Of a DNA stretch of 23,288 nucleotides, positions 2,911-23,288 are shown one piece after another. How positions within the stretch are numbered: position 1 is the stretch's first letter; the number at the start of each line of letters is the position of its first letter. Source of the DNA: Octopus sinensis (taxonomy: Eukaryota). Location: NCBI RefSeq assembly GCF_006345805.1, contig NW_021836622.1, forward strand, positions 1 through 23,288, read 5' to 3'. Below the pieces are notes generated by a model. It saw only the letters and a program-made list of their open reading frames with translations, did no database searches and was not told where the DNA came from. Made by a program: the position numbers and the translations under genes.

Positions 2911-2932
2911 TCATCAATCAATCAATCAATCA
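2911..2932 (+). repeat. (AATC)n 3' tail of family A copy 2
   Basis: tcatcaatcaatcaatcaatca directly after the 3' hairpin-gaaac motif; short tandem-repeat tails are typical of CR1-group LINEs. Confidence 0.88.
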
Positions 2933-3005
2933 TATAATATATTATATATATATATATATATAACTTATAATATATATATATATTATATATATATTATATA
3001 TAAAC

Positions 3006-3036
<31 letters not shown>

Positions 3037-3056
3037 AATATATATATATATATATC

Positions 3057-3089
<33 letters not shown>

Positions 3090-3374
3090 GAATAATATAT
3101 TATATATATATTATATATAAATATTATATATAAATATATTATATTTATATATATATATATATATATAAATATATATATAAATATATATATAATAATATAA
3201 TATATATAACTATATATATATATATATCTATATATATAACTATATATATATATATACATATATATAACTATATATATATATATGTATAACTATATTATAA
3301 CATATATATATATAAAAACTATATATATAACTATATATATATATATAACTATATATATATTATATATATAAAAC

Positions 3375-3406
<32 letters not shown>

Positions 3407-3410
3407 ATAT
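2933..3410. repeat. Interrupted (TA)n microsatellite
   Basis: Direct reading; recurring tataactata / tataaaactata interruptions. Confidence 0.97.
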
Positions 3411-3577
3411 AATTTAGTTATCGCCATACTATATGGCATTCTTATAAAAATAAGAATAAAGCTGACCGCTTATTAGCTCCATGAGGCCATCGCTTAAGTT
3501 AGCTATTTGATACACAAACTGTATCCATATAACCTTTGAACAAGGGAGGTCAGTCGCTCCACACTACTTGGCCGGCA

Positions 3578-3619
3578 GCTACAGACGCGTTTCGGGGTAT
3601 TGCCCCTTTTCAATGCAGC
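3578..3619 (-). ncRNA. Minimal type I hammerhead ribozyme, U3-A8 core variant
   Basis: Minus strand reads GCUGCA-UUGAAAA-GGGG-CAAUA-CCCC-GAA-ACGCGU-C^UGUAGC. Stem I is 6 bp (one G-U) and stem II is 4 bp G-C. Core UUGAAAA keeps the 3-8 Watson-Crick pair; GAAA is present; stem III is the palindrome ACGCGU; the site is GUC. Predicted cut between 3584 and 3583. Confidence 0.85.
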
Positions 3620-3629
3620 GTAGCCAAAC

Positions 3630-3645
3630 CAGTAGGTGTCGCTTC
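3630..3645. other. 16-bp target-site duplication at the 3' end of Tx1 copy 1
   Basis: cagtaggtgtcgcttc is identical at 3630, 8963, 9318 and 14628. Confidence 0.92.
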
Positions 3646-3863
3646 TTAAATCTTTATTATGATTATAAAAATCTTACAGAGATAGTACATTACATACAAA
3701 ACATAATTACAAAAGTTTACGTTGTTCGTTTGATATTTACATATGTTGATTATTGATTATGATACTAGACTTTATTTCTCCTTTTTTTTAAAATAAAAAT
3801 GATTTTGGCCAGCTAGGTATATCACAGTCAGGATTCTTACCCGACAGCCTAAGAGCCCAGAGA

Positions 3864-6800
3864 CTATTTTCTCCCTTCATGATGACCAAGCAGGGTTACT
3901 CCACCCACCTTTTTTATCACATCCTTCCATCGATTCACATACTTTTTCTGTGTCAGGTCCTCTTCTCTAAATCCATCTTGCTCTTTAGATGGTATCTGAA
4001 GTATTTTAACATACCATATCCAGAGACAAAGGTTCCTGACACCAAACCTTCCAATCTAGTTCTCCACACACACTCTTTCAGTACTGCCACCGTACAGTGA
4101 AAACAAGCCTCACCTTCCTTTGAGAGTCCAGCTGGCGGTATCATCTTTATTATAGAACCAGCCGATAGCTGTACTCGTCCCAGATGCGACAACACGTGTT
4201 CTACGTAACTTATTAAGCCTGACAGCTCCTGACAATGTACAAAAGCGTGCTGGACGGTTTCATCGTCCAACCCACATCTTGGACATGTCGGTGGCACTGA
4301 CATTCCATGCCTATATAACTTATCGCGAACAGGTAGAGCATTCCTATAGCACTGCCAAGTCAGGGATTTTTGGTAATTGTCCAAATACCCCGGCTTGAAA
4401 GTCTTCTTAAACAGGTCGGATAGTTGATCCTCATCGAACCCCAGAGCCCCTCTTAGGACGTCGTCATTTTTTGCCTCTACCATCCTTCTATAAATGTCGA
4501 GGTGGTATTCCGCAGCCGGCTTTGCCTATCTTGTGGATCAGCCAGAGTGCCTGTCGGCACTCTTTCTGCCATAAAGTCAGGTTCCGTCTTTTAATGAAAC
4601 CGGTTTAAATCTCTCCATAGAGTCCGGTTGCGGGAAGAAATTATCTGCCAGCGGACTCCACACCTTATCACCTTCCAGGTGAAACCAGAGATGTCTCAGT
4701 CTCAGCGCATGCCTGCGCATCATTAACCAAGGCATCCCCAGCCCACCCTTTAGTGGTTCCTGGCAACACACGGAGCGCCTTACAAGTGGCTTTCCTCCCT
4801 TCCACAAAAAGCGGAAAAGGAGTCGATCCAACTTGCTTAGCCACAAATCGGGGCAAGGCACGACAGTCAGGCGATAGGTGATTACAGATGCTATAAACAC
4901 CTGTACCACCTCCGCCCTCCCTTTCAAGGAAAGATGCCTTCCGAACCACTCCCGAACTATGGCTTCGACCTTGGTCACTACCTCGCCAATTTTTCTCCGT
5001 CTGGGAGTCTGAACCAAACCAAACTCCAAGCAATTTAACAGGACCATCTGTCCAGTGTCCAACAACACTGGACGATATCGGCTTGTTCCTCCAGGTGCCG
5101 AGGCGCAAACCAGTGGACTTGTCCTTGTTAACTTTGCCCCAGCCACCGCTTCGTATCTTCGGAGAGCACCTTCTACACGAGTTAGTTGTGCTTCGTTGGA
5201 CACGATGAAGGTGACGTCATCCGCATACGCAGAAACAGACTTACCGCATCCGATTTCATTAGGATTGCATCTCACCGTCTCCAACTTCCGCAGCAATGGC
5301 TCAAGAGCCAAAACGTACAGGAGAGGGGACAAGGGACATCCTTGACGAACTGAACGCTTAATCGAAAACGGTTCCGTTAGTAACCGTTTATCTGGACTGT
5401 GGACTTGATACCGCTGTACATAGCTGATATCCACCCGCGAAAGTCAGGACTAGCCAGCCCACCTCGAGAACCGTCGCCAGGTACTGATGATCTACCCTAT
5501 CAAATGCTTACTTTGGTCTAAATGGACCAATGCCCCTCCTTTGCCGGCTAATTGCCCAAACCTGTCTATAGTGTAGCGTAGAAGGTGAAGATTATCTTCG
5601 ATCGACCTGCCTGGGATTGCACATGTCTGTGCCTTTCCGACAAGTTTTTCCATGACGACCTTCAACCTTTCTGCTAACACCTTGGCCAAAATCTTTAACT
5701 CTACATTAAGTAGAGTTATGGGCCTATAATTACTAATATTATCCCCCTTGCTCGGGTCTTTCTGGATCAGCGTCACAACTCCCCGGCTCACAGAACTGGG
5801 AATCCTCCCATTCTGTTGCCAGTTTGCGTAGACGCTTGCCAGTATGTCCCCGAACAAGTCCGGCATACAACAATAAAACTCATAGGGCAGACCATCCAGT
5901 CCCGGCGACTTTTCCCGGGCGCATTCAGCCAAAACCCCTCTTACCTCCGCGGGAGTAATCGGTCCTTCACAGCGTTCCGCTCTGCTTGGCGAGAGCCGAG
6001 GCCCACCAGCTAGGAAGTTCTGTAAGTCCTCCCCTCGCTCGAGTGGATCGCCCTCCCCAAACAACCGAGCGAAATGCTGTTGAAAGACCTTCTGTATCTC
6101 CTCCTGTCCATAGATTTTGCGTCCCTGTTCGTCAGTTAAAGACTTAATAGTGGACTTTTTGCCCTTCTGACTCTCCACACGACGTGCCCATCCGGCAACA
6201 TTAATACCTTCTCGTTTCACTGCACGTAGCTTAGCTCTGACTCTACATCCTTCATGCTTGGCATTGAGGTGACGGTACAAGATCGTTCTCTCTGCTAACA
6301 CTCTAGATGCACAGCCAGATCCCATTGCCTCGTCTAAGTTCTTAACTAAATCGCCCTCTATTCTAGTCCTATCTAAACTTAGCTGGTTGCTAAATCTAAT
6401 GGACTCCAAACGGATGGCTCTTTTGAGGGCGATCCACCATCTATATTAATGATGGTTCCACATAATGCCTCTGGACTAATTCCATAATCCGGTTACGGAA
6501 AGCTTCACAAGCCAAAATAGACTTGTTCATTTTCCAGTATCCGGGTCCTGTCTATGGCATTTATCTACATGTACCTCACACGTCACTAATTTGTGATCCG
6601 TGTAAGGCACAATACAAAATTGTGGACAGCTAATGCTATTCCTATCTCGTTCTTTAACAAATACCCTATCTATATACGATCTGCGTGAGCCGTCATTGTT
6701 ACTCCACGTCCACTGTGGAATGCTCGGCTCATCCATTCGAAACCGATCTACTAGATTAAAGCTCGTCAGTAGACCCTTAAGGCAAGGATTCCCCCTTCTA

Positions 6801-7259
6801 TCAGACGAGCCCACACTATCTATCCGCGCATCGATGATAGTGTGAAATCCCTACCAATACTACCGTTTTAGACGTCACTAGAAAGTGCTCCAAGTTCCGA
6901 TAAAAACCAGTCTGCCTACCCTCATTAGGAGCATAAACAGCTACCAACCTGAAGGACTGCTTACTTACGTGAGTTACATCGAGGACAACCAGCCTACCTT
7001 CTGGGTCCATAAAGACAGTACTTACCTGTAAGTCCAAGTTCTTCCTGATAAGGACTGCCACGCCTGCACTTCCTCCTCGGCTAGGAGAAATAAATTTCTC
7101 GTAACCATTGAGAAGATGCGAGAACGCTTGGGTTCCTCTCATCTTGGACTCGGTGACAATGGCTACATCTATTCTGTGTGTCCTGAGGTCGTCCAGCAAG
7201 CAAGCCTGTTTCCATTTCGACCCCATTCCACGCACATTTATACAGCCCAACTTAATCAT
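3864..7259 (-). CDS. Tx1-type ORF2: AP endonuclease + reverse transcriptase + C-terminal CCHC zinc finger (~1130 aa reconstructed; frameshifted as assembled)
   Basis: EN motifs GCINVRG, TES, SYIDRVFV, YTDH; RT motifs KSPGLDGLPYEFY, YRPITLLNVELKIL, RQGCPLSPLL, AYADD; finger CPRCGLDDETVQHAFVHC. Stop reconstructed with copy 2 (..HEGRK*). Several single-base indels break the frame. Confidence 0.9.
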
Positions 7260-7279
7260 CGATGAATGAAGAAAGTTTG

Positions 7280-8745
7280 TTACTTACGGTTGTGAGAGGG
7301 AGCATGGCAGCTTTTGTCTGCCTGCTTCCCCACACTCTCCCGTTGTTGCTGGGCATTTAACGGCGTTGCCACCGGGCTCTGGGATGGAGTGGCTGCCGGG
7401 CTAATATTCAATTTTCCAGCTATCACCTCTTGTGTGACATCTTTAATCAGGTTGTCCCTCACGTGTAGTTGGAAGAGTCTCTCCTTCCATTCCTCCTCTC
7501 CAACCTTCGCATACCCTCCAATCCGGGTTTTTTTCGATGGTTGAAACATTTTATGTTTGGTTTCGCCTTTATGTACCAAACTACTCTCTCGTTTTTTGTG
7601 TTATAAGCAATGCACCTATCGGTTTTTTGAATCCTTTTAAAGTTGGGGGCTGGGGTTTAATGAAATGCTGGCCTACAAAAGTAGTGCCAGCGGGGTGGGA
7701 TTGGATAATTTTTTTGTGTTGTTCTGCGTTTGTTTTTCTTTTGTTTTGGGGTGGGGAGTCCGGGGTATTGGATTTCTTCCTTTTGTTGGTTACGGTCGTA
7801 TATTCCATTACTTCCAGTTCTTTTCCATTTGATAAATTATTTTCCACCTCGTTTTCGTTTTCGCTTTGTTTTCCATTCATTTTCTTTCCTCCTTTGACTT
7901 TCATTTTGCTTTTTCCGGGTATTCTCTTTTGTTGTTGCTGTGATGTCTGCTTTGTTCTCCACAGCGGTTTGAATGGGGGCATTAACGGGTTTTTTCTTTT
8001 GCACTCTGAGCGGACGTGACCCTTCTGCCCACATTTGAAACATCTGGGCCTACGTCCCTCAACCGATACCCGCGCAGTGTGTCCATCCCCACGAAGACCC
8101 TGTCTGGCAAACTCTCCAGCGTTGCATTGTCAGCTTGAACGATCATTTCAAGCTGCTGACCTTTCCAAATTTTGCCTCTTTCATCCTCATGTTTAAAATT
8201 TAATTTCTCTTCTACGTCGAATACGACCGCTGTTGCTGCCCACATTACATCGTAACCTTGGTATACTCTATTGTTATCTTAGCTGTTCTGCGCCCTAAGT
8301 ACGTGGGCAGCAACAGGATGTCTGCACTCTTCAACGTTTGAGTTGAAATTTCCTTCGCTATGCTAGCCGACTCGAAATGCGCTTCAATAGTAGCGCTTCT
8401 CACTCCTCGGCCAACATAGCGAACCTTGTTCCAAAATGGTGCCATGCACCGTTCTACCAATTCATTTCTTACATCTGCAATCTTTTTTTCCTTAATATTA
8501 TATACCTTATAAATTACCGTCTTCTCACGGATTGCTTGTAAGGTGTCAGGGGGCGGTATTATTCTCGTTTCTTCTCCGCCTTTGTATGAACTTTCTGAAC
8601 TTGAAGAGATCCTCCATTGTTACTTCCAGTTCTATAACATTGCCTCCAACGGCTTCCGAAAAACTTTGTTTCTCCTTTGTATCCTTTGCTTTATAACTTC
8701 TCCCATCTCGGGAAAATCAGAATTTGACGTTAAGTCAAGATCCAT
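7280..8745 (-). CDS. Tx1-type ORF1 (gag-like nucleic-acid-binding protein, ~490 aa reconstructed; frameshifted as assembled)
   Basis: ATG at 8745 (MDLDLTSNSDFPEMGEV), a single CX2CX4HX4C knuckle CFKCGQKGHVRSEC at 8001-8042, a Lys-rich tract, stop at 7280-7282. Confidence 0.82.
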
Positions 8746-8824
8746 AATAAAATGCAAGTGACTTGTCACAAGAGACAAGATAAAAATTAAATCCACACTG
8801 AATTAAAGTTCATATATAAAAAGA

Positions 8825-8851
8825 AATTTTCTACCCCGAAGGGCGAAAATT
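8825..8851 (-). promoter_or_regulatory. cUUCGg tetraloop hairpin in the Tx1 5' UTR (repeated at 14490-14516)
   Basis: Minus strand AAUUUUC-GCCC-UUCG-GGGU-A-GAAAAUU; identical in both copies. Function unknown. Confidence 0.55.
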
Positions 8852-8962
8852 ACTTTGTTTCACAAGTTAATACTCCAAAAATTGTACGTGTAAATCCAGA
8901 ACAGAACGAACTAACATAACAGCTTACAGCGTAAAATAATCCGACGTAATCCAAGGAAAAAT

Positions 8963-8978
8963 CAGTAGGTGTCGCTTC
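8963..8978. other. Target-site duplication at the 5' end of Tx1 copy 1
   Basis: cagtaggtgtcgcttc. Confidence 0.92.
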
Positions 8979-9267
8979 CGACAATCTGTTCAAAGGTTTT
9001 ATTTACCTAGCTTCGGTGGAATACATCCACTTGTTTTCAATAATAGAAATATTAAAATTACTAAGTCTCTCTAAAAGAGAACAACGGCAGCGTTCCCGGA
9101 AATATTAGTTATCGCCATACTAATATGGCATTCTTATAAAAATAAGAAAAAGCTGACCGCTTATTAGCTCCATGAGGCCATCGCTAAGTTAACTATTTGA
9201 TACACAAACTGTATCCATATAACCTTTGAACAAGGGAGGTCAGTCGCTCCACACTACTTGGCCGGCA

Positions 9268-9307
9268 GCAACAGCCGTTTCGGGGTATTGCCCCTTTTCA
9301 ATGCAGC
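9268..9307 (-). ncRNA. Degenerate copy of the hammerhead ribozyme
   Basis: Stem II and core are intact, but stem III/cleavage site reads ACGGC instead of ACGCGUC and stem I has a mismatch. Predicted inactive unless this is sequencing error. Confidence 0.65.
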
Positions 9308-9317
9308 GTAGCCAAAC

Positions 9318-9333
9318 CAGTAGGTGTCGCTTC
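9318..9333. other. Target-site duplication at the 3' end of Tx1 copy 2
   Basis: cagtaggtgtcgcttc (16 bp; 17 bp if the following t is included for this copy). Confidence 0.92.
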
Positions 9334-9549
9334 TAAATCTTTATTATGATTATAAAAATCTTACAGAGATAGTACATTACAATACAAAACATAATTACAA
9401 AAGTTTACGTTGTTCGTTTGATATTTACATTTGTTGATTATTGATTATGATACTAGACTTTATTCTCCTTTTTTTTAAATTAAAAATGATTTTGGCCAGC
9501 TAGGATATCACAGTCAGGATTCTTACCCGACAGCCTAAGAGCCCAGAGA

Positions 9550-12500
9550 CTATTTTCTCCCTTCATGATGACCAAGCAGGGTACTCACACCCGCCTTTTT
9601 TATCACATCCTTCCATCGATTCACATACTTTTTCTGTGTCAGGTTCCTCTTCTCTAAATCCATCTTGCTCTTTAGATGGTATCTGAAGTATTTTAACCCA
9701 TATCCAGAGACAAGGTTCCTGACACCAAACCTTCCAATCTAGTTCTCCACACACACTCTTTCAGTACTGCCACCGTACAGTGAAAACAAGCCTCACCTTC
9801 CTTTGAGAGTCCAGCTGGCGGTATCATCTTTATTATAGAACCAGCCGATAGCTGTACTCGTCCCAGATGCGACAACACGTGTTCTACGTAACTTATTAAG
9901 CCTGACAGCTCCTGACAATGTACAAAAGCGTGCTGGACGGTTTCATCGTCCAACCCACATCTTGGACATGTCGGTGGCACTGGCATTCCATCAGGGATTT
10001 TTGGTAATTGTCCAAATACCCCAGCTTGAAAGTCTTCTTAAACAGGTCGGATAGTAGATCCTCATCGAACCCCAGAGCCCCTCTTAGGATGTCGTCATTT
10101 TTTGCCTCTACCATCCTTCTATAAAATGTCAAGGTGGTATTCCCGCAGCCGGCTTTGCCTATCTTGTGGATCAGCCAGAGTGCCTGTCGGCACTCTTTCT
10201 GCCATAAAGTCAGATTCCGTCTTTTAATGAAACCAGGTTTAAATCTCTCCATAGAGTCCGGTTGCGGGAAGAAATTATCTGCCAGCGGACTCCACACCTT
10301 ATCACCTTCCAGGTGAAACCAGAGATGTCTCAGTCTCAGCGCATGCCTGCGCATCATTAACCAAGGCATCCCCAGCCCACCCTTTAGTGGTTCCTGGCAA
10401 CACACGGAGCGCCTTACAAGTGGCTTTCCTCCCTTCCACAAAAAGCGGAAAAGGAGTCGATCCAACTTGCTTAGCCACAAATCGGGGCAAGGCACGACAG
10501 TCAGGCGATAGGTGATTACAGATGCTATAAACACCTGTACCACCTCCGCCCTCCCTTTCAAGGAAAAATGCCTTCCGGACCACTCCCGAACTATGGCTTC
10601 TACCTTGGTCACTACCTCGCTCCAATTTTCTCCGTCTGGGAGTCTGAACCAAACCAAACTCCAAGCAATTTAACAGGACCATCTGTCCAGTGTCCAACAA
10701 CACTGGACGATATCGGCTTGTTCCTCCAGGTGCCGAGGCGCAAACCAGTGGACTTGTCCTTGTTAACTTTTGCCCCAGCCACCGCTTCGTATCTTCGGAG
10801 AGCACCTTCTACACGAGTTAGTTGTGCTTCGTTGGACACGATGAAGGTGACGTCATCCGCATACGCAGAAACAGACTTACCGCATCCGATTTCATTAGGA
10901 TTGCATCTCACCGTCTCCAACTCCCGCAGCAATGGCTCAAGAGCCAAAACGTACAGGAGAGGGGACAAGGGACATCCTTGACGAACTGAACGCTTAATCG
11001 AAAACGGTTCCGTTAAGTAACCGTTTATCTGGACTGTGGACTTGATACCTCTGTACATAGCTGATATCCCCCCGCGAAAGTCAGGGCCTAGCCCAGCCGC
11101 TTCGAGAACCGTCGCCAGGTACTGATGATCTACCCTATCAAATGCTTTACTTTGGTCTAAATGGACCAATGCCCTTCCTTTGCCGGCTAATTGCCCAACC
11201 CTGTCTATAGTGTAGCGTAGAAGGTGAAGATTATCTTCGATCGACCTGCCTGGGATTGCACATGTCTGTGCCTTTCCGACAAGTTTTTCCATGACGACCT
11301 TCAACCTTTCTGCTAACACCTTGGCCAAAATCTTTAACTCTACATTAAGTAGAGTTATGGGCCTATAATTACTAATATTATCCCCCTTGCTCGGGTCTTT
11401 CTGGATCAGCGTCACAACTCCCCGGCTCACAGAACTGGGAATCCTCCCATTCTGTTGCCAGTTTGCGTAGACGCTTGCCAGTATGTCCCCGAACAAGTCC
11501 GGCATACAACAATAAAACTCATAGGGCAGACCATCCAGTCCCGGCGACTTTTCCCGGGCGCATTCAGCCAAAACCCCTCTTACCTCCGCGAGAGTAATCG
11601 GTCCTTCACAGCGTTCCGCTCTGCGTGGCGAGAGCCGAGGCCCACCAGCTAGGAAGTTCTGTAAGTCCTCCCCTCGCTCGAGTGGATCGCCCTCCCCAAA
11701 CAACCGAGCGAAATGCTGTTGAAAGACCTTCTGTATCTCCTCCTGTCCATAGATTTTGCGTCCCTGTTAGTCAGTTAAAGACTTAATAGAATACTTTTTG
11801 CCCTTCTGACTCTCCACACGACGTGCCCATCCGGCAACATTAATACCTTCTCGTTTCACTGCACGTAGCTTAGCTCTGACTCTACATCCTTCATGCTTGG
11901 CATTGAGGTGACGGTACAAGATCGTTCTCTCTGCTAACACTCTAGATGCACAGCCAGATCCCATTGCCTCGTCTAAGTTCTTAACTAAATCGCCCTCTAT
12001 TCTAGTCCTATCTAAACTTAGCTGGTTGCTAAATCTAATGGACTCCAAACGGATGGCTCTTTTGAGGGCGATCCACCATCTATATTAATATGGTTGCACA
12101 TAATGCCCTCTGGACTAATTCCATAATCCGGTTATGGAAAGCTTCACAAGCCAAAATAGACTTGTTCATTTTCCAGTATCCGGGTCCCTGTCTATGACAT
12201 TTATCTACAGTGTACTAACACGTCACTAATTTGTGATCCGTGTAAGGCACATACAAAATTGTGGACAGCTAATGCTATTCCTATCTCGTTCTTTAACAAA
12301 TACCCTATCTATATACGATCTGCGTGAGCCGTCATTGTTACTCCACGTCCACTGTGGAATGCTCGGCTCATCCATTCGAAACCGATCTACTAGATTAAGG
12401 CTCATCAGTAGACCCTTGAGGCAAGGATTCCCCCTTCTATCAGACGAGCCCACACTATCTATCCGCGCATCGATGATAGTGTTGAAATCCCCTACCAATA

Positions 12501-12900
12501 CTAGCGTTTTAGACGTCACTAGAAAGTGCTCCAAGTTCCGATAAAAACCAGTCTGCCTACCCTCATTTGGAGCATAAACAGCTACCAACCTGAAGGACTG
12601 CTTACTCACGTGAGTTACATCGAGGACAACCAGCCTACCTTCTGGGTCCATAAAGACAGTACTTACCTGTAAGTCCAAGTTCTTCCTGATAAGGACTTCC
12701 ACGCCTGCACTTCCTCCTCGGCTAGGAGAAATAAATTTCTCGTAACCATTGAGAAGATGCGAGAACGCTTGGGTTCCTCTCATCTTGGACTCGGTGACAA
12801 TGGCTACATCTATTCTGTGTGTCCTGAGGTCGTCCAGCAAGCAAGCCTGTTTCCATTTCGACCCCATTCCACGCACATTTATACAGCCCAACTTAATCAT
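9550..12900 (-). pseudogene. Tx1-type ORF2 (APE-RT-zinc finger), copy 2; frameshifts plus a 52-bp deletion before the zinc finger
   Basis: ORF-track pieces 12226-12900 (EN, includes GDFN), 10612-11703 (RT, YADD), 9896-10657 and 9693-9986. Bases equivalent to 4309-4360 are missing at 9991/9992. Confidence 0.9.
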
Positions 12901-12920
12901 CGATGAATGAAGAAAGTTTG

Positions 12921-14409
12921 TTACTTACGGTTGTGAGAGGGAGCATGGCAGCTTTTGTCTGCCTGCCTCCCCCACACTCTCCGTTGTTGCTGGGCATTTA
13001 ACCGGCGTTGCCACCGGGCTCTGGGATGGAGTGGCTGCCGGGCTAATATTCAATTTTCCAGCTATCACCTCTTGTGTGACGTCTTTAATCAGGTTGTCCC
13101 TCACGTGTAGTTGGAAGAGTCTCTCCTTCCATACCTCCTCTCCCACCTTCGCATACCTCCAATCCGGGTTTTTTTCCGATGATTTGAAACATTTTATGTT
13201 TGGTTTCGCCTTTATGTACCAAACTACTCTCTCGTTTGTTGTGTTATAAGCAATGCACCTATCGGTTTTTTTGAATCCTTTTAAAGTTGGGGGCTGGTTT
13301 AATGAAATGCTGGCCTACAAAAGTAGTGCCAGTGGGGTGGGATTGGATAATTTTTTTGTGTTGTTCTTCTGCGTTTGTTTTTCTTTTTGTTTGGGGTGGG
13401 GAGTCCGGGTATTGGATTTCTTCCTTTTGTTGGTTACAGTCGTATATTCCATTACTTCCAGTTCTTTTCCATTTGATAAATTATTTTCCCCCTCGTTTTC
13501 GTTTTCGTTTTGTTTCCATTCATTTTCTTTACCTCCTTTTGACTTTCATTTTGCTTTTTCCGGGTATTCTCTTTTGTTGTTGCTGTGATGTCTGCTTTGT
13601 TCTCCACAGCGGTTTGAATGGGGGCATTAACGGGTTTTTTCTTTTTGCACTCTGAGCGGACGTGACCCTTCTGCCCACATTTGAAACATCTGGGCCTACG
13701 TCCCTCCACCGATACCCGCATAGTGTGTCCATCCCCCACGAAGACCCTGTCTGCAAACTCTCCAGCGTTGCATTGTCAGCTTGAACGATCATTTCAAGCT
13801 GCTGACCTTTCCAAAATTTTGCCTCTTTCATCCTCATGTTTAAAATGTTTAATTTCTCTTCTACGTCGAATACGACCGCTGTTGCTGCCCACATTACATC
13901 GTAACCTGTTGGTATATCCTCTATTGTTACCTTAGCTGTTCTGCGCCCTAAGTACGTGGGCAGCAACAGGATGTCTGCACTCTTCAACGTTTGAGTTGAA
14001 ATTCCTTCGCTATGCTAGCTGACTCGAAATGCGCTTCAATAGTAGCGCTTCTCACTCCTCGGCCAACATAGCGAACCTTGTTCCAAATTGGTGCCATGCA
14101 CCGTTCTACCAATTCATTTTTTACATCTGCAATCTTTTTTCCTTAATATTATATACCTTATAAATTACCGTCTTCTCACGGATGATTGTTGTGGGTGTCA
14201 GGGGGGGGTATTATTCTCGTTTCTTCTCCATTCTTTTGTATGAACTTTCTGAACTTGAAGAGATCCCCCATTGCTACTTCCAGTTCTATAACATTGCCTC
14301 CAACGGCTTCCGAAAAACTTTGTTTCTCCTTTGTATCCATTTGATTTCCATTTTTTATAACTTCTCCCATCTCGGGAAAATCAGAATTTGACGTTAAGTC
14401 AAGATCCAT
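12921..14409 (-). CDS. Tx1-type ORF1, copy 2 (frameshifted as assembled)
   Basis: MDLDLTSNSD start at 14409, knuckle CFKCGQKGHVRSEC at 13647-13688, stop at 12921-12923. Confidence 0.82.
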
Positions 14410-14627
14410 ATTAAAATGCAAGTGACTTGTCACAAGAGACAAGATAAAGATTAATTCCACACTGAGTTAATAGCACATATATAAAAAGAAATTTTCTACC
14501 CCGAAGGGCGAAAATTATTTTGTTCCACAAGTTAATACTCCAAAAATTGTACGTGTAAATCCAGAACAGAACGAACTAACATAACAGCTTACAGCGTAAA
14601 ATAATCCGACGTAATCCAAGGAAAAAT

Positions 14628-14643
14628 CAGTAGGTGTCGCTTC
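14628..14643. other. Target-site duplication at the 5' end of Tx1 copy 2
   Basis: cagtaggtgtcgcttc. Confidence 0.92.
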
Positions 14644-14902
14644 TGACAATCTCTGTTCAAAGGTTTTATTTACCTAGCTTCGGTGGAATACATCCACTTG
14701 TTTTCAATAATAGAAATATTAAAATTACTAAGTCTCTCTAAAAGAGAACAACGGCAGCGTTCCCGGAAAATATTAGTTATCGCCATACTAATATGGCATT
14801 CTTATAAAAATAAGAATAAAGCTGACCGCTTATTAGCTCCATGAGGCCATCGCCTTAAGTTAGCTATTTGATACACAAACTGTATCCATATAACCTTTGA
14901 AC
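14628..14902 (-). mobile_element. Partial unit of the hammerhead tandem repeat
   Basis: Matches 8963-9231; interrupted at cctttgaac by an inversion. Confidence 0.78.
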
Positions 14903-14944
14903 GCTGCATTGAAAAGGGGCAATACCCCGAAACGCGTCTGTAGC
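14903..14944 (+). ncRNA. Minimal type I hammerhead ribozyme, U3-A8 variant, intact, plus strand
   Basis: gctgca-ttgaaaa-gggg-caata-cccc-gaa-acgcgt-c^tgtagc; predicted cut after 14938. Confidence 0.85.
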
Positions 14945-15170
14945 TGCGGACAAGTAGTGTGGAGCGACTGACCTCCCTTGTTCAAAGGTTATATGGATAC
15001 AGTTTGTGTATCAAATAGCTAACTTAAGGCGATGGCCTCATGGAGCTAATAAGCGGTCAGCTTTATTCTTATTTTTATAAGAATGCCATATTAGTATGGC
15101 GATAACTAATATTTTCCGGGAACGCTGCCGTTGTTCTTTTAGAGAGACTTAGTAATTTTAATATCTATTA
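14903..15170 (+). mobile_element. Inverted partial unit of the hammerhead repeat (fold-back; arms 14708-14902 and 14980-15170, 77-nt loop)
   Basis: Reverse complement of the unit, beginning at hammerhead stem I; 2-nt (ac) microhomology at the junction. Confidence 0.85.
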
Positions 15171-15475
15171 TATATTATATATATAAATTATAACTATATA
15201 TATATATATATATATAACACTATATATATATATATATATAACTATATATATAACTATATATATATATATATAAACTATATATATATATATATATAACTAT
15301 ATATATAACTATATATATATATAAAAACTATATATATATATATATATAACTATATATAAACTATATATATATATATAAACTATATATATATATATATAAT
15401 ATATATATATATAACTATATATAATATACTATATATATATATATAATATATATATAATATAAAACTATATATATA

Positions 15476-15516
<41 letters not shown>

Positions 15517-15560
15517 ATATATATATAATAAAACTATATATATTATATAACTATTATATA

Positions 15561-15594
<34 letters not shown>

Positions 15595-15782
15595 AACTAT
15601 ATATATATATAAACTATATATATATATATATAATATATAACTATATATATATAAACTATATATATAACTATATAATATATATAGGACCTAAATATATAAC
15701 TATATATAACTATATAACTATATATAACTATATAACTATATATAACTATATATATATATATAGGACCTTAAATATATATATA
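15171..15782. repeat. Interrupted (TA)n microsatellite
   Basis: Direct reading; aac interruptions, and taggacct(t)aaa twice (15682, 15761). Confidence 0.97.
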
Positions 15783-16014: not shown

Positions 16015-17233
16015 TTGCAGGCCTGCAACAGACGAAATTGGTCTGATAACGAAATTGATGTTTTAATAAACACATGGTTCTCTCTTTCCCAAACAGAAAA
16101 TCTAAATGTATTGTGTTTGAATGAGATTGCCGAAAAAACATCACAAGTGGTCAACACACGATCCGTCAAACAGATTCGTAGCAAGTTGAAACATATCGAA
16201 GTATCTTTCAAACTGATAAGAGGCCATTATGAAAAGCTTCTACATATTTTCACAGTTCAAGAACAACAACAGCTAGAAAATCAGCAGCCACAACAACAAC
16301 AACAACAGAATGAGCCACTCCTGGTTCCCAGCACAATGGCTGACCCTAACATCGGTCAAGCACAACAAGAACAACAACAGCCACAGCAACAAGAACAACA
16401 ACAGCCACTCCTCAACTCTAGCTTACTAGATGATTCACTAAATGCCAGTTCTTTTCACCGCTCTCACAGCAACCACCACAATTATCATCATCATCATCAC
16501 CACCGCTGCCACCATCGTCTTCTATCACCAAAAATACCAACAGAAAACCAAATAAGAAACCACTGCCCTCTTCCCCCACATCACCACCTCAATACTACTG
16601 CAGTAACAAAAACTTAAAGAAACATAGGAAGCAGAATGCGCCCCCCACGGCACAAACAAGAAATCCCCAAATATGCCGCTATTCACTGCGCCAGAGACTC
16701 TGCACAAATAGTGACTGCATCTTCACGCATCTACCCGGCACTAGACGCACTACCGGCCAAGGCCAAAGCACGCATCCCACAATAACATCAACACCACAAA
16801 TAGTAAATCGAAATTCAAAACACACACAACTCGGAGTCCCAAAATCTGCCGGTATTCCCAACGTGAGAGAACATGTCTACTGAGTGACTGTCTCTTCACT
16901 CATCTTCCAGGGACCCGACGCACAAACAGAAACGGGGCCTCAAGCCAACACACAAACCTGAATAACAATAAAAATAGAAACACACCATGCTGCAGTAATG
17001 CTGGTCCAGTCTTTTCAGGAAGACACAAAAACAACAACAACAAAAGTGGAAACTACAACCCTATCCAACAGTGCAACCACACCTCCAGCCAAAAACTGCT
17101 CCCTAAGCAGGAAAATTCTTTTTTAGCCATGTTGAACATGGCAAAAGAGATACACAAAAACATTCTAGCCATCACTCAACACCATCCTATGCTATTACCC
17201 CAGTGCACCAATTCCCCGCATTGCTGCCACTAA
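16015..17233 (+). CDS. LINE ORF1: Myb/SANT-like helical domain, poly-Gln, Ser/Pro-rich linker, two CCCH zinc fingers (two frameshifts; start not identified)
   Basis: NWSDNEIDVLINTW...IAEK...RSVKQIRSKLKHIEVSFK (16036-16212); ICRYSLRQRLCTNSDCIFTHLPGTRR (16671-16748); ICRYSQRERTCLLSDCLFTHLPGTRR (16844-16921), whose frame stays open to taa at 17231-17233. No ATG found upstream in frame. Confidence 0.65.
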
Positions 17234-20223
17234 CACACACAAAAAATCCAAGCCCCCTGCAACAGTCAAAACCAGCCACTACACTAACCTCCACATTCCT
17301 ACTCAATGCACAAGGTGTCAGCCCTTCCATCAATGCACAAAAATGGAAGGTCCAATTCATTGAAGACTGGGTTGGTAACCATTCACACCACATCCCTTTC
17401 TTCATTCTCACTGAGACCCACCTTGACAACTCCCACTTGGAAGCCGAAGTGAGAGTGAAGAATTTCACAACCATCCGCGCGGATCGTATCGGCAGGAGGA
17501 AGGGTGGAACTGCCATTTTCCTGCATGATTCATTTACGGCAGATGGAAATAGTATATTCTCCAACGGCTACTGTGAATCAGTCACCGTGCACAACAAAGC
17601 CAATGACCTGACAGTAATTGGGCTCTATAGGCCGCCCCAAACACCCATACTGTGCTTTAAAGAATGCCTCAACAGCATTAAGTGCTTTATTCAACAGTGC
17701 CATTCTAGCAACATACTCATGATGGGAGACTTCAATCTACCCTGTGTTGACTGGACTACAAACTGTTTGAAACCAAGCACTCCCGCCTCAACCGCTGACA
17801 AAGAAGCAGCAGAGTCACTTTTCGACTTTACGAATGAGTTTTTCTTGTCCCAACTTGTCCTTGCACCAACAAGACATCAGAACATTTTGGACCTAGTGTT
17901 TAGTAACCACACTAACGCTATACATAACGTTACAGTGGAAAAAAACCCTTCTTTCAGACCATGACATGGTTCTCTGTAACATGAAATTCCACCAGCCGAA
18001 AGCTAATCCTAGTGACCTTCCTCCAGCCCACCCATTTGACAACATGGATCTCCATAAAGCCAACTGGGATGCAATCAGGAACGAGCTATCAAATGTTGAC
18101 TGGTCCTTTACACATACACACATCTCCACCAACCATAAAACATCTTGGCAGATCTTTGTAGACACCGTCACAGACATATGTACAAAACACTCCCCACCAA
18201 GACCTGTGAACAAAAAGTGCAGAATCCCCCAAAACAGAAAAACCATTATCAGAAAAATAAAAAGAACAAACAAAAAAATTAACAAACTAAAGTACTGCCA
18301 ACAGCAACACACACATTCGACGGCTATCGCACTGCTTGAATCCAAAAATATAACCTCCAACAATGCATGAAGACCCTCATCAATAACCAAAGATCAGCTG
18401 AGGAGAAGTGGGCCATTGAAAAAATCAAACTCAACCCCAAAGTGTTCTTTTCATTTGCGAGGAAACGCAGGGTCACTGTCTCCACTGTAGGCCCTCTAAT
18501 TGACGAAACTGGCACTCTCCAAGATAATGCCAAATCCATGGCCGAGATACTGCAGAAACAATACTGCTCTGTTTTCAGCAATCCTGATATGGCCGATCTG
18601 GGCTGTATCAGTGATGTCAACCCCCAACACACTATATCGGACATAACGTTTAGTGCCCCTGATGTCTTAGCGGCGATAAACGAAATAAAACACAATTCAG
18701 CAGTAGGCCCCGATAGGTTCCCTGCTTGTGTCCTGAAGGTGTGTCGACACCAACTTGCATCTCCCGTTGCTAATCTGTGGAGAAACTCACTGGATGCTGG
18801 CTATATTCCAAAAACCTTCTGTCCCAGTCTGTTGTCCCAGTTTTCAAAAAGGGAAACAAGTCCCTTGCAGTGAATTACCGTCCGATCTCACTCACCTCTC
18901 ATATCATCAAGGTATTTGAGAGGGTGGTGAGATCTCGAATAACCCAATTTCTGGAAAGCAACAGACGGCTGATCTCCAACCAACATGGGTTCCGTAATGG
19001 AAGGGACTGCCTAACGCAGCTCCTGCATCACTTTGAGGACATTTTGAGAGCTTTGGAGAGGGCTCCAACACCGATGTCATCTACCTTGATTTCAGTAAGG
19101 CCTTCGACAGGGTCGATCACAAGATCCTATTGAAAAAACTATCCAACATTGGTGTCTCTGGAAAGTTACTGAAAGTTACTGACAGACAGATCTCAACATG
19201 TTGTAGTTGAAGGGGTAAAATCAAGCCCAGCCAAAGTCAGTAGTGGCGTTCCGCAAGGCACTGTGCTGGGCCCACTTCTTTTCATCATTTACATTAATGA
19301 CATTAATGACATCATCAAGCACAGCAACATAAAAATCTTTGCAGATGACTCCAAGCTACAGAAGGTCATAAATGAGGCGAGTGACCGGACATGCCTTCAG
19401 TCAGATCTACTGGCTGTTATCCAATGGGCAGAAAAAAACAATATGCTGCTGAACGAGGATAAATTTGAGCTAATCCACTTTGGAAAAGAGGATGCCCTGA
19501 AACTCCCATACTCCCTTCCTTCAGGTGAAACTCTCGCGGCGTCCAACAACATCAGAGACTTGGGAGTAATTGTGGACAACAACGTAAGCTGGGCCACTCA
19601 TATAAACACCAAAGTTGACATGGCCCGCAGAATGTGTTCCTGGATTCTCAGAACTTTCCAGTCGAGAGATATCCACACCATTATCTTCTCTTCTCCACTT
19701 TTGCCCGACCCCACCTTGAATACTGTTGTCCACTGTGGTCTCCCCACACAATACAAGGTATCATAAAAGTTGAAGCACCTCAAAGGGCAATCACAAAAAA
19801 GATAGATGGCATGACAGGCCTCGACTATTGGGGTCGACGAGAAAAGCTAAAACTCTATTCTCTCCAACGTCGTCGTGAGCGCTACATCATCTGCATGATG
19901 TGGAAAATATTCCATCAGCATTGCCCAAATGATGCTGGCATCACCTTTAAGGTACATCCAAGGCTTGGGCCCCGTGCCATCCGCCCAAAACAAAAATCGC
20001 ACTCTCATCTCATAACAACAATACGGCACAATTATTTCACCTCAATTGGCCCCGCTCTCTTTAACATTACACCAAAACACATTAAAACAGAAACTGACCC
20101 TATAGGGTTCAAGAAGTCTTTGGACAGATTCCTTCAAGAAATCCCGGATAACCCCCTACACCTGGATATGTCTCTGTAAACAATAACTCTCTACTTGAGT
20201 GGGCCATAGTGCCCAAATTCTGA
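17203..20223 (+). CDS. LINE ORF2: AP endonuclease + reverse transcriptase (~1000 aa reconstructed; frameshifted as assembled)
   Basis: EN motifs LNAQG, LTETHL, LYRPP, GDFNLP, NILDLVF, SDH; RT motifs NYRPISLTSHIIKVFER, QHGFR, YLDFSKAFDRVDH, QGTVLGPLLF, FADDSK, RPHLEYCCPLWSP, SLQRRRERY. Reconstructed stop at 20221-20223; the start is approximate. Confidence 0.9.
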
Positions 20224-20312: not shown

Positions 20313-20643
20313 TATAATATATATATATATAAAACTATATATATAACTATATATAAACTATATATATATATATATATATATTATATAATATATATATATA
20401 TATATAATATAATATATATATAATAAAACTATATATATAACTATATATATATATATAAATATAAAAACTAATATATATATATATATAACTATATATATAT
20501 ATAAACTATATATATAACTATATATATATATATATATATAATATATATATTAACTATATTATATATAAAACTATATATATAACTATATATTATATATATA
20601 TAATAACTATATATATATATAAAACTATATATATACCTATATA

Positions 20644-20674
<31 letters not shown>

Positions 20675-20694
20675 AAACATATATTATATATATA

Positions 20695-20749
<55 letters not shown>

Positions 20750-20765
20750 ATATATATATATATAT
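20313..20765. repeat. Interrupted (TA)n microsatellite
   Basis: Direct reading. Confidence 0.97.
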
Positions 20766-20840
20766 ATTATTGGTGAATTGAAGAAATGGAGCTGAACGCA
20801 GATTGAACCGTTCAGCTCCATTCTTCAATTCACCAATAAT
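20766..20840. repeat. Near-perfect hairpin, ~32-bp arms with a 10-nt loop
   Basis: attattggtgaattgaagaa(a)tggagctgaacg - cagattgaac - cgttcagctccattcttcaattcaccaataat. Confidence 0.92.
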
Positions 20841-21091: not shown

Positions 21092-23288
21092 CTAAGTCCA
21101 GTTTGCCGTGGCTGGCCACTGATCTAAGAGAGAGTTGTAGCTGCTGCCCTTAGGTTACTTCCTACCTTGCAGTGGGTTCATCTGGGATCCCGGAAAGCAG
21201 CTTGTCTAGATGTTTTTTGAAAATGTCCACATCCGCATCATGTAGTTTTCTTAGTTTTCTTGGCAGTTTGTTGAACAGCTGAGGGCCCCTGAACCCCAGG
21301 CTATTACAGTATCTGCTCCTTACCCAGTGACGTCCTGTACGGGGATTGGAACAGCTCTCAATTCCAAAATTTGGTGCTAGTCCCTCCAGGATTTTCCATA
21401 TGTATATCACTGCATATCTCTCTCGTCTTCGTTCCAAGGAGTACAAATTGAGTTCCCTAAGCCTCTCCCAATAGTTCTTTTCTTTCATGGTGGAAATCCT
21501 CTTGGTGAAATGTCTTTGGATTGTCTCAAGCTCTGTGGTTAGTTTGACACTATGCGGTGACCACAGTTGGGAGCAGTAGTCCAGGCGGCTTAGGACAAAT
21601 GTCCTCCATAGTCTCAGCATGGTCTCGCAGTCTCTTGTCCGGAATGTCCTCAGGATCCAGCCAGTGAGTCGTCTGCACATTGTCGCCACCTTCGCGATGT
21701 GTGAAGAAAAAGATGCATCGTCACTCATGTCTATCCCCAGGTCCCGTATTGATTTCGATACTGGGATTTCGATCCCTCCTGGACCAGTATAGTTGTGTTG
21801 TAATGTATATGTGTTTACAGCTTGATATTGTAAGGCTTGAAATTTACCAGCATTAAATTGCATGTTGTTGTCTTCAGCCCATTTGTATATGGCATCCAGA
21901 TCTTGTTGTAAAAGGTCAGCATCAGCTGGGTTTTTGATTGCCTGTGCTACCTTTGTGTCATCAGCATAGCTAGTGAGGGATGTTGTTTGTGCTACCAAGG
22001 GCATGTCAGAGAGCGCCACCAAAAACAGCGAGGGTCCCAAGACTGTGCCCTGTGGCACCCCGCTTGCTATTGGTGTCTTTCCCGAGAGGGCTCCATTGGC
22101 TGCAACCATCTGGCTTCTGTCCTTCAGGAAGTCATGTATCACTCACCTACTTTTCCTGTTATGCCGAGTCTGAGTAATTTGTGACATATCACTCCGTGGT
22201 CGACTTTGTCAAAGGCCTTCGCAAAGTCGAGATATACCACATCCACCTGTGAGCGATCCAGTAGTTGTTTCAGTACCCAGTCGTAGTGTTGTAACAGCTG
22301 CGTAAGGCAGCTTCTTCTGGGCGAAAGCCATGCTGTGCGTCAGTGAGACGGTTAGTTTCTTCGAGGAACGTGATCAGTTTTTTTCTGATGATTCGTTCCA
22401 TGACCTTACTTATGTGTGACATCAGGGAGACTGGCCTGTAGTTTTTGGCCTCTGCTCTACTCCCTCCTTTGTGGATAGGGCATATGGTGCCTTCTTTTAG
22501 CGCCCTGGGCAGTTTACGTTAGCCAAGGAACCACTGAAGAGCTTCTTCAGTGGTCCCGCTAGGGCATGCCTGCATGCTTTTAGGAGGACTGCTGGGAATC
22601 CATCTCGGTCCAGAGCTGAGTTTATTCTCATTTCTTCTATGGCAGATATTACATCCCTCTCTGTTATGTCTATGTGGTCGATGGTTGTTGTTTGGTTTTG
22701 GAGGTTGTGGCATCAAAGAAAACTTCTGGTTGTGATTTGCATGTGCCCCAGAGGGGATATGAACACACTTTTATACTGTTCCTTTAGTATTTCACTTATC
22801 CCTTGGGGGTCCTCAGTTAGAGAGCCCTTTTTATCAAAGAGTGGGCCAATCTTGCAGTGTACCGAGGTGGTTCTCTTTCGCAAATTTAAAGAAGGCTTTA
22901 GGGTTTGTTTTAATATTCTCTATGGCCCTGGCTTCTCTCTCTGCCTCTCCTTCATAGGAAAGTTTGAGTGCAGTTTCCGTTTCCAAAAGTTTCAGGTGGA
23001 GTCCCTCATTGTTTCTCTGCCGTGCATTCAGTGCTTCGAGAGCTTAGCTCTTCGCCTCATAAGTATTTTCTGTCTCTGGGAATAACGTTCCTATGCCCGC
23101 TGGCTTTTTTCTCCAGGACAAACTTATGGCATATGTTCTGTATTGTTGTCATGAAATGTTGGAAATGTGTGTTGGTGTCTTGTGTGGTGATAAAGTCACT
23201 CCAGTCATGTTTTCGGATCTCTTCGTTGATCTTCTTCCAGTTTGCCTTATGGAAGTTTAGACTGGATAGGCCTGTGGTATTTCTAATG
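21092..23288 (-). pseudogene. LINE ORF2 (linker + reverse transcriptase), frameshifted, incomplete in window
   Basis: GSRAEAKNYRPVSL, QHGF, YLDFAKAFDKVDH, SGVPQGTVLGP, YADDTK, SLERRRERY, IPDEP; the native stop is inferred near 21092. Confidence 0.88.

Follow-up and report, generated by a model that had tools for sequence, protein, structure and literature searches.

The 23,288-nucleotide stretch of Octopus sinensis DNA analysed here, hereafter the window (assembly GCF_006345805.1, contig NW_021836622.1, positions 1–23,288, + strand), holds within the block 3411–15170 two full-length long interspersed nuclear elements (LINEs), both lying at the same position of a ~355-nt repeat unit that carries a hammerhead ribozyme motif and resembles the retrozymes of animals. 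Each LINE is bracketed by the same 16-bp target-site duplication, CAGTAGGTGTCGCTTC, and both copies share a frameshift between their endonuclease (EN) and reverse transcriptase (RT) regions, in addition to private lesions. The history favoured, with a probability of about 0.45, is a single LINE insertion followed by DNA-level duplication of the LINE together with its unit. The first-pass annotation of this DNA had proposed that the LINE family targets the retrozyme unit and had struck it twice independently, with one insertion followed by duplication of the composite named as the alternative. The shared frameshift now puts that alternative ahead; the proposed targeting finds no support beyond this one locus, and the evidence within the window leans the other way. 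The observation is confirmed and its interpretation partly supported, as a single locus cannot show that the LINE family aims at the retrozyme repeat.

Layout of the locus

Exactly four matches to the 16-mer CAGTAGGTGTCGCTTC are found on the + strand, starting at 3630, 8963, 9318 and 14628, where dinucleotide shuffles of the window give a chance expectation of 0. These occurrences bracket LINE copy 1 (3646–8962) and LINE copy 2 (9334–14627), an exact-match search placing the duplication at the 3′ junction of copy 1 at 3630–3645 (+). The sequence flanking the LINEs falls into four pieces, p1, p2, p3 and the inverted p4, which align in register as one ~355-nt unit with one 16-mer per period, in the order partial, full, partial and inverted partial that had been annotated. 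Piece p1 (3411–3645, − strand), placed by register alignment with p2 and p4, is partial, the 3′-most in the ribozyme orientation, and terminates in the 16-mer at 3630–3645. Between the LINEs lies the full unit p2 (8963–9333, −), comprising 355 nt plus a second 16-mer, while p3 (14628–14902, −) opens with the 16-mer at 14628–14643 and is truncated before the hammerhead, both pieces again being defined by register alignment. The inverted partial unit p4 (14903–15147, +), recognised as an inverted repeat and placed by alignment, contains an intact hammerhead of the U3/A8 type at 14903–14944, matched by the structural descriptor described below, and together p3 and p4 form a 168-nt palindrome that is 98% complementary. 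Read in the ribozyme orientation, the block begins with an inverted copy that is truncated and continues as a direct partial tandem; degenerate (AT)n microsatellites enclose it on both sides (2932–3411 to the left and 15161–15762 to the right).

No empty, uninterrupted target site is present within the window, all four 16-mers adjoining a LINE. The register of the alignment upholds the tandem order, but the clean array said to emerge on removal of the LINEs is therefore a reconstruction and is not directly seen; the reconstructed empty target would read ...GCCAAACCAGTAGGTGTCGCTTCYGACAATC... With all target sites filled, two readings arise, namely a 355-nt array hit twice, or a 5.67-kb composite of LINE and unit present about twice, and the direct part of the block, at 11.46 kb, amounts to ~2.0 of these 5.67-kb periods. 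If the repeat consists of LINE and unit together, sites that are all filled, with none empty, are to be expected. Occupancy of 2/2 sites would be unusual for a site-specific LINE unless its occupancy were very high.

The two LINE copies

Both LINEs read on the minus strand. Copy 1 (5317 bp) has its first open reading frame (ORF1) at ~8745–7283 and ORF2 at 7259–3953; in copy 2 (5294 bp) these lie at ~14409–12924 and 12900–9639. The copies align end to end with ~97% identity, 116 mismatches and 42 indel events, among them one indel of 10 bp and one of 52 bp, the latter a deletion in copy 2 that corresponds to positions 4308–4359 of copy 1. This alignment, with the four exact 16-mers, bears out the claim of two full-length elements sharing one 16-bp duplication.

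ORF1 contains a CCHC knuckle (Pfam zf-CCHC, E=8e-6), and ORF2 combines an apurinic/apyrimidinic (AP)-type endonuclease (Exo_endo_phos, E=3e-13), a reverse transcriptase (RVT_1, E=4e-33) and a C-terminal Cys/His motif (zf-RVT, E=4.5e-11). The nearest solved RT is that of human L1 ORF2p (E=7e-38; R2, E=4e-24), and the nearest solved endonuclease is L1 EN. With ORF1 preceding ORF2, an AP-type EN, an RT, the C-terminal Cys/His motif and a target-site duplication, the copies show the features by which the L1/Tx1 group is recognised. A poly(A) tail is absent from both, copy 1 ending in ...AATAAAGATTTAA and the terminal ...AATAAAGATTTA(A) abutting the duplication directly; this precise 3′ end combined with the absence of poly(A) is a Tx1-clade trait that both copies possess. 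Judged by sequence, both elements are full-length LINEs of the AP endonuclease (APE) type with a 16-bp target-site duplication, assigned at the level of the L1/Tx1 group.

Single-base indels between the copies fall mostly in runs of one base (25/31), and a similar indel density is found in the short units; long-read assembly error may account for some of the apparent decay of the ORFs. An artefact on a larger scale, in which one LINE-bearing unit was wrongly expanded or a fold-back chimera was assembled, would accommodate both this density of single-base indels, in LINEs and units alike, and the near-perfect palindrome with which the block ends on the right. The copies nevertheless differ by ~2% in substitutions, are distinguished by the 52-bp and 10-bp indels and carry their own sets of lesions, and the middle unit p2 has unique changes, all of which make such an artefact the most improbable of the explanations considered.

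Shared and private lesions

When the two copies were read as a mosaic, with either base allowed at each difference, ORF1 (490 codons) needed 0 repairs and ORF2 (1087 codons) exactly 1, against 5 + 7 ORF-breaking lesions (ORF1 + ORF2) requiring repair in copy 1 alone and 6 + 8 in copy 2. Eleven lesions are private to copy 1 and 13 to copy 2. The one lesion that the mosaic does not remove is a 1-nt frameshift between EN and RT at 6444–6449 (− strand; ~6446, corresponding to ~12085 in copy 2), in the context AATTAT -> AATAT. All combinations of the nearby private indels (4/4) leave the reading still out of frame or interrupted by a stop, and homologues read ...LIQRALVGAVTGNRWW... without a break across the same point. 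Because the homologues are continuous and the mosaic is still broken, a 1-nt deletion common to both copies is indicated; as the RT is then out of frame, the element should not have retrotransposed twice, which favours a single insertion duplicated later.

The differences between the copies comprise 21 synonymous and 79 non-synonymous changes, where the expected synonymous fraction is 0.24–0.26. The differences look neutral, which points to decay without selection of both copies from essentially one sequence. This pattern rules out diverged active sources, not two hits from one source.

Substitutions in the paralogous flanks number 4 in 497 nt (p1 and p2 alone differ by 2 in 228 nt), and those in the LINEs 93–116 in 5249 nt, a large share of which cluster next to indels. 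CpG decay was considered as a cause of the higher LINE divergence and rejected, as CpG transitions account for only 13/116 substitutions and the unit resembles the LINE in its density of CpG. A different LINE fragment, towards the left end of the window, has likewise undergone tandem duplication (period ~1670 bp), and such events evidently do happen in this region. The case for a single insertion accordingly draws on the 5′ junctions and the 16-bp duplication, which are identical in both copies, on the shared frameshift, on the neutral differences, on flanks no more diverged than the LINEs, on the tandem duplication elsewhere in the window and on the 52%-identical relatives with unrelated flanks described below.

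Several points weigh against this reading. The shared frameshift could stem from gene conversion between the adjacent copies, or from a recurrent assembly error, given the 25/31 single-base indels in base runs. The comparison of flanks and LINEs gives no sign of units older than the LINE copies, yet it draws on very few flank substitutions. Many Tx1-clade families are strictly site-specific, with the same duplication at each copy (PMC4494074), and independent hits are therefore compatible with identical junctions. Finally, the inferred bottom-strand nick site, 5'-CGCTTC^YGACAATC, contains GC and is unlike the AT-rich L1 type, despite kilobases of (AT)n nearby, a hint that the nuclease recognises a specific sequence.

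The same nick site, in the midst of abundant (AT)n, also speaks for two independent site-specific insertions into adjacent units by a LINE family specific for the retrozyme unit. Here the common orientation would let the retrozyme array transcribe the LINE, and retained downstream target sequence would guide priming. The proposal is in keeping with two co-oriented, full-length copies that have precise ends, lack poly(A) and share an identical 16-bp duplication, and with a 3′ junction that differs by one base between copies (TTTAA vs TTTA); specificity for other repeats is common in Tx1 (PMC4494074). It would, however, oblige a source already defective upstream of its RT to have moved twice; moreover, no purifying selection is visible in the differences between copies, and neither an empty site in the window nor a further copy in the collections searched has come to light. 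Two insertions are regarded as the less likely course, and one insertion followed by duplication of the LINE with its unit is preferred.

The host repeat and its hammerhead

Piece p1 contains an intact type-I hammerhead motif at 3578–3619 (−), identified by structural descriptor and minimum free energy (MFE) folding, with cleavage predicted between 3584 and 3583. On the LINE strand it reads GCUGCA UUGAAAA GGGG-CAAUA-CCCC GAAA C-GC-G U C^UGUAGC. Helix I has 6 bp and helix II 4 bp, including G10.1-C11.1, the cleavage triplet is GUC, and helix III has 2 bp, set inside the palindrome ACGCGU; a helix III so short and palindromic implies action as a dimer. The core is UUGAAAA ... GAAA ... C17, not CUGANGA, with U3 and A8 replacing C3 and G8. 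As positions 3 and 8 pair with one another, U3-A8 represents a Watson-Crick covariation, and the motif is best described as a core variant and not as a canonical member. The same covariation has been reported in ~1,300 hammerheads of Schistosoma Penelope-like elements, in a study that also describes the architecture of canonical metazoan type-I hammerheads (Cervera and de la Pena 2014, PMC4209133).

The descriptor, which accepts either core (C3/G8 or U3/A8), has two matches in the window (3619–3578 on the minus strand and 14903–14944 on the plus strand) and 0 in 300 dinucleotide shuffles. On the strand of the LINEs, p1 has the only hammerhead now intact, the p2 hammerhead (~9268–9307) having a cleavage site disrupted by a substitution and a 2-nt deletion. 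The spacing from the duplication to helix I is exactly 10 nt, GTTTGGCTAC, as the first-pass annotation had it, and the hammerhead and LINE do share one strand (minus) and one orientation. Its identification of a hammerhead-bearing, retrozyme-like repeat holds as regards the descriptor matches and the significance of the fold, but the core is not canonical.

Rfam returned no match, either at the gathering threshold on the whole window or at E<=10 on the unit pieces. This blank was dropped as an argument against the hammerhead, since at E<=10 Rfam also misses the canonical CUGACGA hammerhead of a freshwater metagenome contig (L003, below). A U3/A8 hammerhead with canonical metazoan helix sizes makes a clean example of one undetected by the Rfam covariance models.

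Taken from cleavage site to cleavage site, the monomer RNA measures 363 nt, with 41% GC, and has an MFE of -124.5 kcal/mol (z = -7.46), which 0/100 dinucleotide shuffles equal. Helices I and II of the hammerhead both form in the MFE structure, which leaves the core unpaired. In the predicted fold the 16-mer (within the segments 3630–3650 and 14628–14650) pairs with the segment just 3′ of the cleavage site (3555–3580), and this pairing would set the LINE within a rod-like extension of helix I. The possibility that the unit is an untranslated region of the LINE was rejected, similarity between the two being limited to chance 9-10-mers.

Retrozymes are here understood as tandem units of 150–450 bp with a GC content below 45–50% and a type-I hammerhead in each. 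The octopus unit has 355–363 nt, 41% GC and a tandem order consistent across p1, p2 and p3; it amounts to ~2.4 units, with every boundary occupied by a LINE. It is accepted, on sequence grounds, as a hammerhead retrozyme-like repeat of variant core, represented by only ~2.4 units, all interrupted or truncated. Insertions of Penelope-like elements typically show an inverted 5′-truncated copy beside a partial tandem and a bias towards microsatellites (Craig et al. 2021, PMC8557442). The layout of the block within (AT)n has this signature, and fits the proposal that animal retrozymes derive from Penelope-like elements and lack autonomy (Li, Clavereau and Pollet 2026, preprint, 10.64898/2026.07.22.740005).

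The same signature, an inverted 5′-truncated copy and then a direct partial tandem in a microsatellite (PMC8557442), invites a model in which the duplication took place at the RNA level. The LINE-carrying unit would have been transcribed and the 5.67-kb composite reverse-transcribed as a multimer, which could have proceeded by rolling-circle copying of a hammerhead-processed circular RNA or by the partial-tandem mode of Penelope-like elements, so that the block 3411–15170 arrived in one event. A direct part of ~2.0 composite periods, the equally low divergence of units and LINEs and a shared lesion derived from a single template all suit such a model, and retrozyme multimers are proposed to form likewise (PMC7229834). 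Reported retrozymes are nevertheless only 170–400 nt, with no composite of such size among them (PMC7229834), an 11-kb cDNA is long, and of the two active hammerheads that would be needed the middle one (p2) is now broken. The window holds nothing to tell this route from unequal crossing-over, and it is considered improbable.

Very little weight is given to a bolder conjecture: a LINE lineage specialised on hammerhead retrozymes would enter co-oriented just upstream of the hammerhead, be transcribed from a constitutively expressed array and have its 3′ end cut by the host ribozyme ~75 nt downstream. The target-identical tail so produced could anneal to the nicked site, and the result would be a 5.7-kb protein-coding 'giant retrozyme' able to circularise. 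Use of retrozyme transcription and of the ribozyme by the LINE is allowed by the co-orientation and the 75-nt spacing, while the tests run lend it no support.

Relatives in sequence collections

A 5.8-billion-protein set, metagenome contigs, and prokaryote-genome and viral collections were searched, the source genome evidently lying outside all of them. None of these protein, metagenome, viral and prokaryote collections, which evidently do not include that genome, yielded another copy of either the LINE family or the unit, the prokaryote-genome and viral sets giving no match at either the DNA or the protein level. The best protein matches reached <=52% identity over most of the query or RT, and short fragments 63–66%.

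Among relatives whose flanks could be read, the nearest are in the ENA assembly ERZ21867824, which contains a LINE family 52% identical to that of Octopus, in three copies with three unrelated 3′ flanks and no poly(A). Two of these copies (contig L004, 1–2295 and 6976–9255) are 97% identical and lie 7 kb apart; the third (contig L005, ~4524–9088) is ~89% identical to them. Judged by these flanks, the relatives are not site-specific, which speaks against two targeted insertions in Octopus, although at 52% identity they are too distant to decide the matter for the octopus family. Pointing the opposite way, a JGI metagenome contig (L001) with 63% identity over the RT and C-terminus, the closest relative in which the 3′ end is visible, enters at least 75 nt of (ATT)n there (region 1980–2105). 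This ending resembles those of microsatellite-specific Tx1 families and would suit a site-specific octopus lineage, but L001 too is too distant to decide.

A scan of metagenome DNA with the helix-II pattern gave one match, in a freshwater lake contig (L003, TBL_comb47_HYPODRAFT_10135176, 1–1112). It consists of a 580-nt tandem repeat with a canonical type-I hammerhead, UCCUAA CUGACGA GGGGCAAUACCCC GAAAC-UA-GUA UUAGGA, in which helix II and its loop are identical to those of the octopus unit; the remainder of the L003 unit is unrelated.

Proposed history

Beyond the anatomy of the block, the duplication, the shape of the hammerhead, the shared and private lesions and the neutral substitutions, all of which are observed, we infer an order of events and a mechanism of duplication. 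A hammerhead-bearing non-autonomous retroelement, namely a non-LTR (long terminal repeat) retrozyme that was probably dependent on a Penelope-like element, would first have entered an (AT)n microsatellite, its insertion forming a short, partial tandem array flanked 5′ by a truncated copy in inverted orientation. A single L1/Tx1-type LINE would then have inserted into one unit by target-primed reverse transcription, generating the 16-bp duplication 10 nt upstream of helix I in the ribozyme orientation. Once in place, the LINE would have gained the frameshift between EN and RT, after which the composite of LINE and unit (period ~5.67 kb) would have been duplicated, most likely by unequal crossing-over between the homologous stretches of unit that flank the LINE. 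Neutral decay of both copies would have followed.

Neighbouring elements

Degenerate (AT)n tracts of the AACTATATAT type, 450–600 bp in length, occur three times in the window (2932–3411, 15161–15762 and 20313–20767) and separate all transposon blocks, every one of them positioned 3′ to a LINE or to the retrozyme block; they may represent targets of insertion, or else 3′ tails that expanded. A second, unrelated LINE at 16015–20179 (+) has an ORF1 with a Myb/SANT-like domain that scores below the Pfam cut-off (25.7 vs 27 bits), followed by EN and RT ORFs broken by frameshifts. The duplicated fragment at the left end (1–2900, +) belongs to a third LINE family, marked by the motif YSLERRRERY, and comprises the RT and C-terminal part in two tandem partial copies (~1670-bp period) with blocks 97–99% identical; a 77%-similar copy of this family stands inverted at the right end (21162–23288, −).

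Significance

At present the locus amounts to transposons nested within a repeat-rich region, and its use lies in the lead it gives for a census of the source genome. If targeting were confirmed genome-wide, hammerhead retrozymes would join the target niches of Tx1/L1-type elements, a new target for a known behaviour, and this would be the first case found of an autonomous LINE inside a ribozyme-processed retroelement that forms circular RNA. Such confirmation would bear on which reverse transcriptases act on retrozyme RNAs, and on how promoter-less site-specific LINEs are transcribed and trimmed. A literature search found no report of a LINE aimed at a hammerhead retrozyme, in agreement with the earlier statement that no described Tx1 lineage with this target was known. 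The accompanying notion of a 'parasite of a parasite' is by contrast not new, as Tx1 elements in piggyBac, Mariner, Harbinger, LTR and satellite targets have already been published (PMC4494074).

Comparison with known systems

The published targets of Tx1 elements include the piggyBac element Tx1D, Mariner-N4_AMi, Harbinger, LTR retrotransposons, satellites, small nuclear RNA genes, 5S genes and microsatellites (Kojima 2015, PMC4494074). From these, Tx1L in Tx1D of Xenopus laevis and the crocodilian families Tx1-Mar, Tx1-9_AMi, Tx1-8_Crp and Tx1-4_AMi (PMC4494074) were taken for comparison. The octopus LINE resembles them in being an APE-type L1/Tx1 element without poly(A), in occupying a set position inside a mobile element and in having a long duplication whose sequence is fixed; for the short interspersed nuclear element partners of Tx1L and the crocodilian elements, insertions in tandem with a duplication between them have been described (PMC4494074). 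It differs in that its host element is a hammerhead retrozyme, a type absent from the published Tx1 targets found. The families of Kojima, moreover, owe their specificity to many copies, with a criterion of >20% of flanks, whereas the octopus case is a single locus with only two copies known, and these are probably not independent.

The host repeat is close to the non-LTR retrozymes of animals (PMC7229834; 10.64898/2026.07.22.740005) in its ~355-nt low-GC unit, its type-I hammerhead with a helix I of 6 bp and a helix II of 4 bp, its palindromic helix III requiring dimers, its strongly self-paired monomer and its tandem arrangement. It departs from them in having ~2.4 units only, all interrupted or truncated, and a U3/A8 core. 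With Penelope-like elements it shares the U3-A8 covariation and palindromic positions 15.2-16.2 (PMC4209133), as well as the inverted 5′-truncated copy beside a partial tandem and the microsatellite site (PMC8557442). Unlike these elements the octopus unit has no Penelope-like RT or GIY-YIG ORF, and unlike their minimal hammerhead it has helix sizes of the 'canonical' metazoan kind. A functional analogy, and no more, may be drawn with R2 in 28S ribosomal DNA, which is likewise a sense-oriented LINE in a transcribed repeat and in which a 5′ ribozyme resembling that of hepatitis delta virus (HDV) could define RNA ends. In R2, however, the HDV-like ribozyme is owned by the LINE and the endonuclease is restriction-like, whereas in Octopus the hammerhead belongs to the host repeat and co-transcription with the LINE is conjectural.

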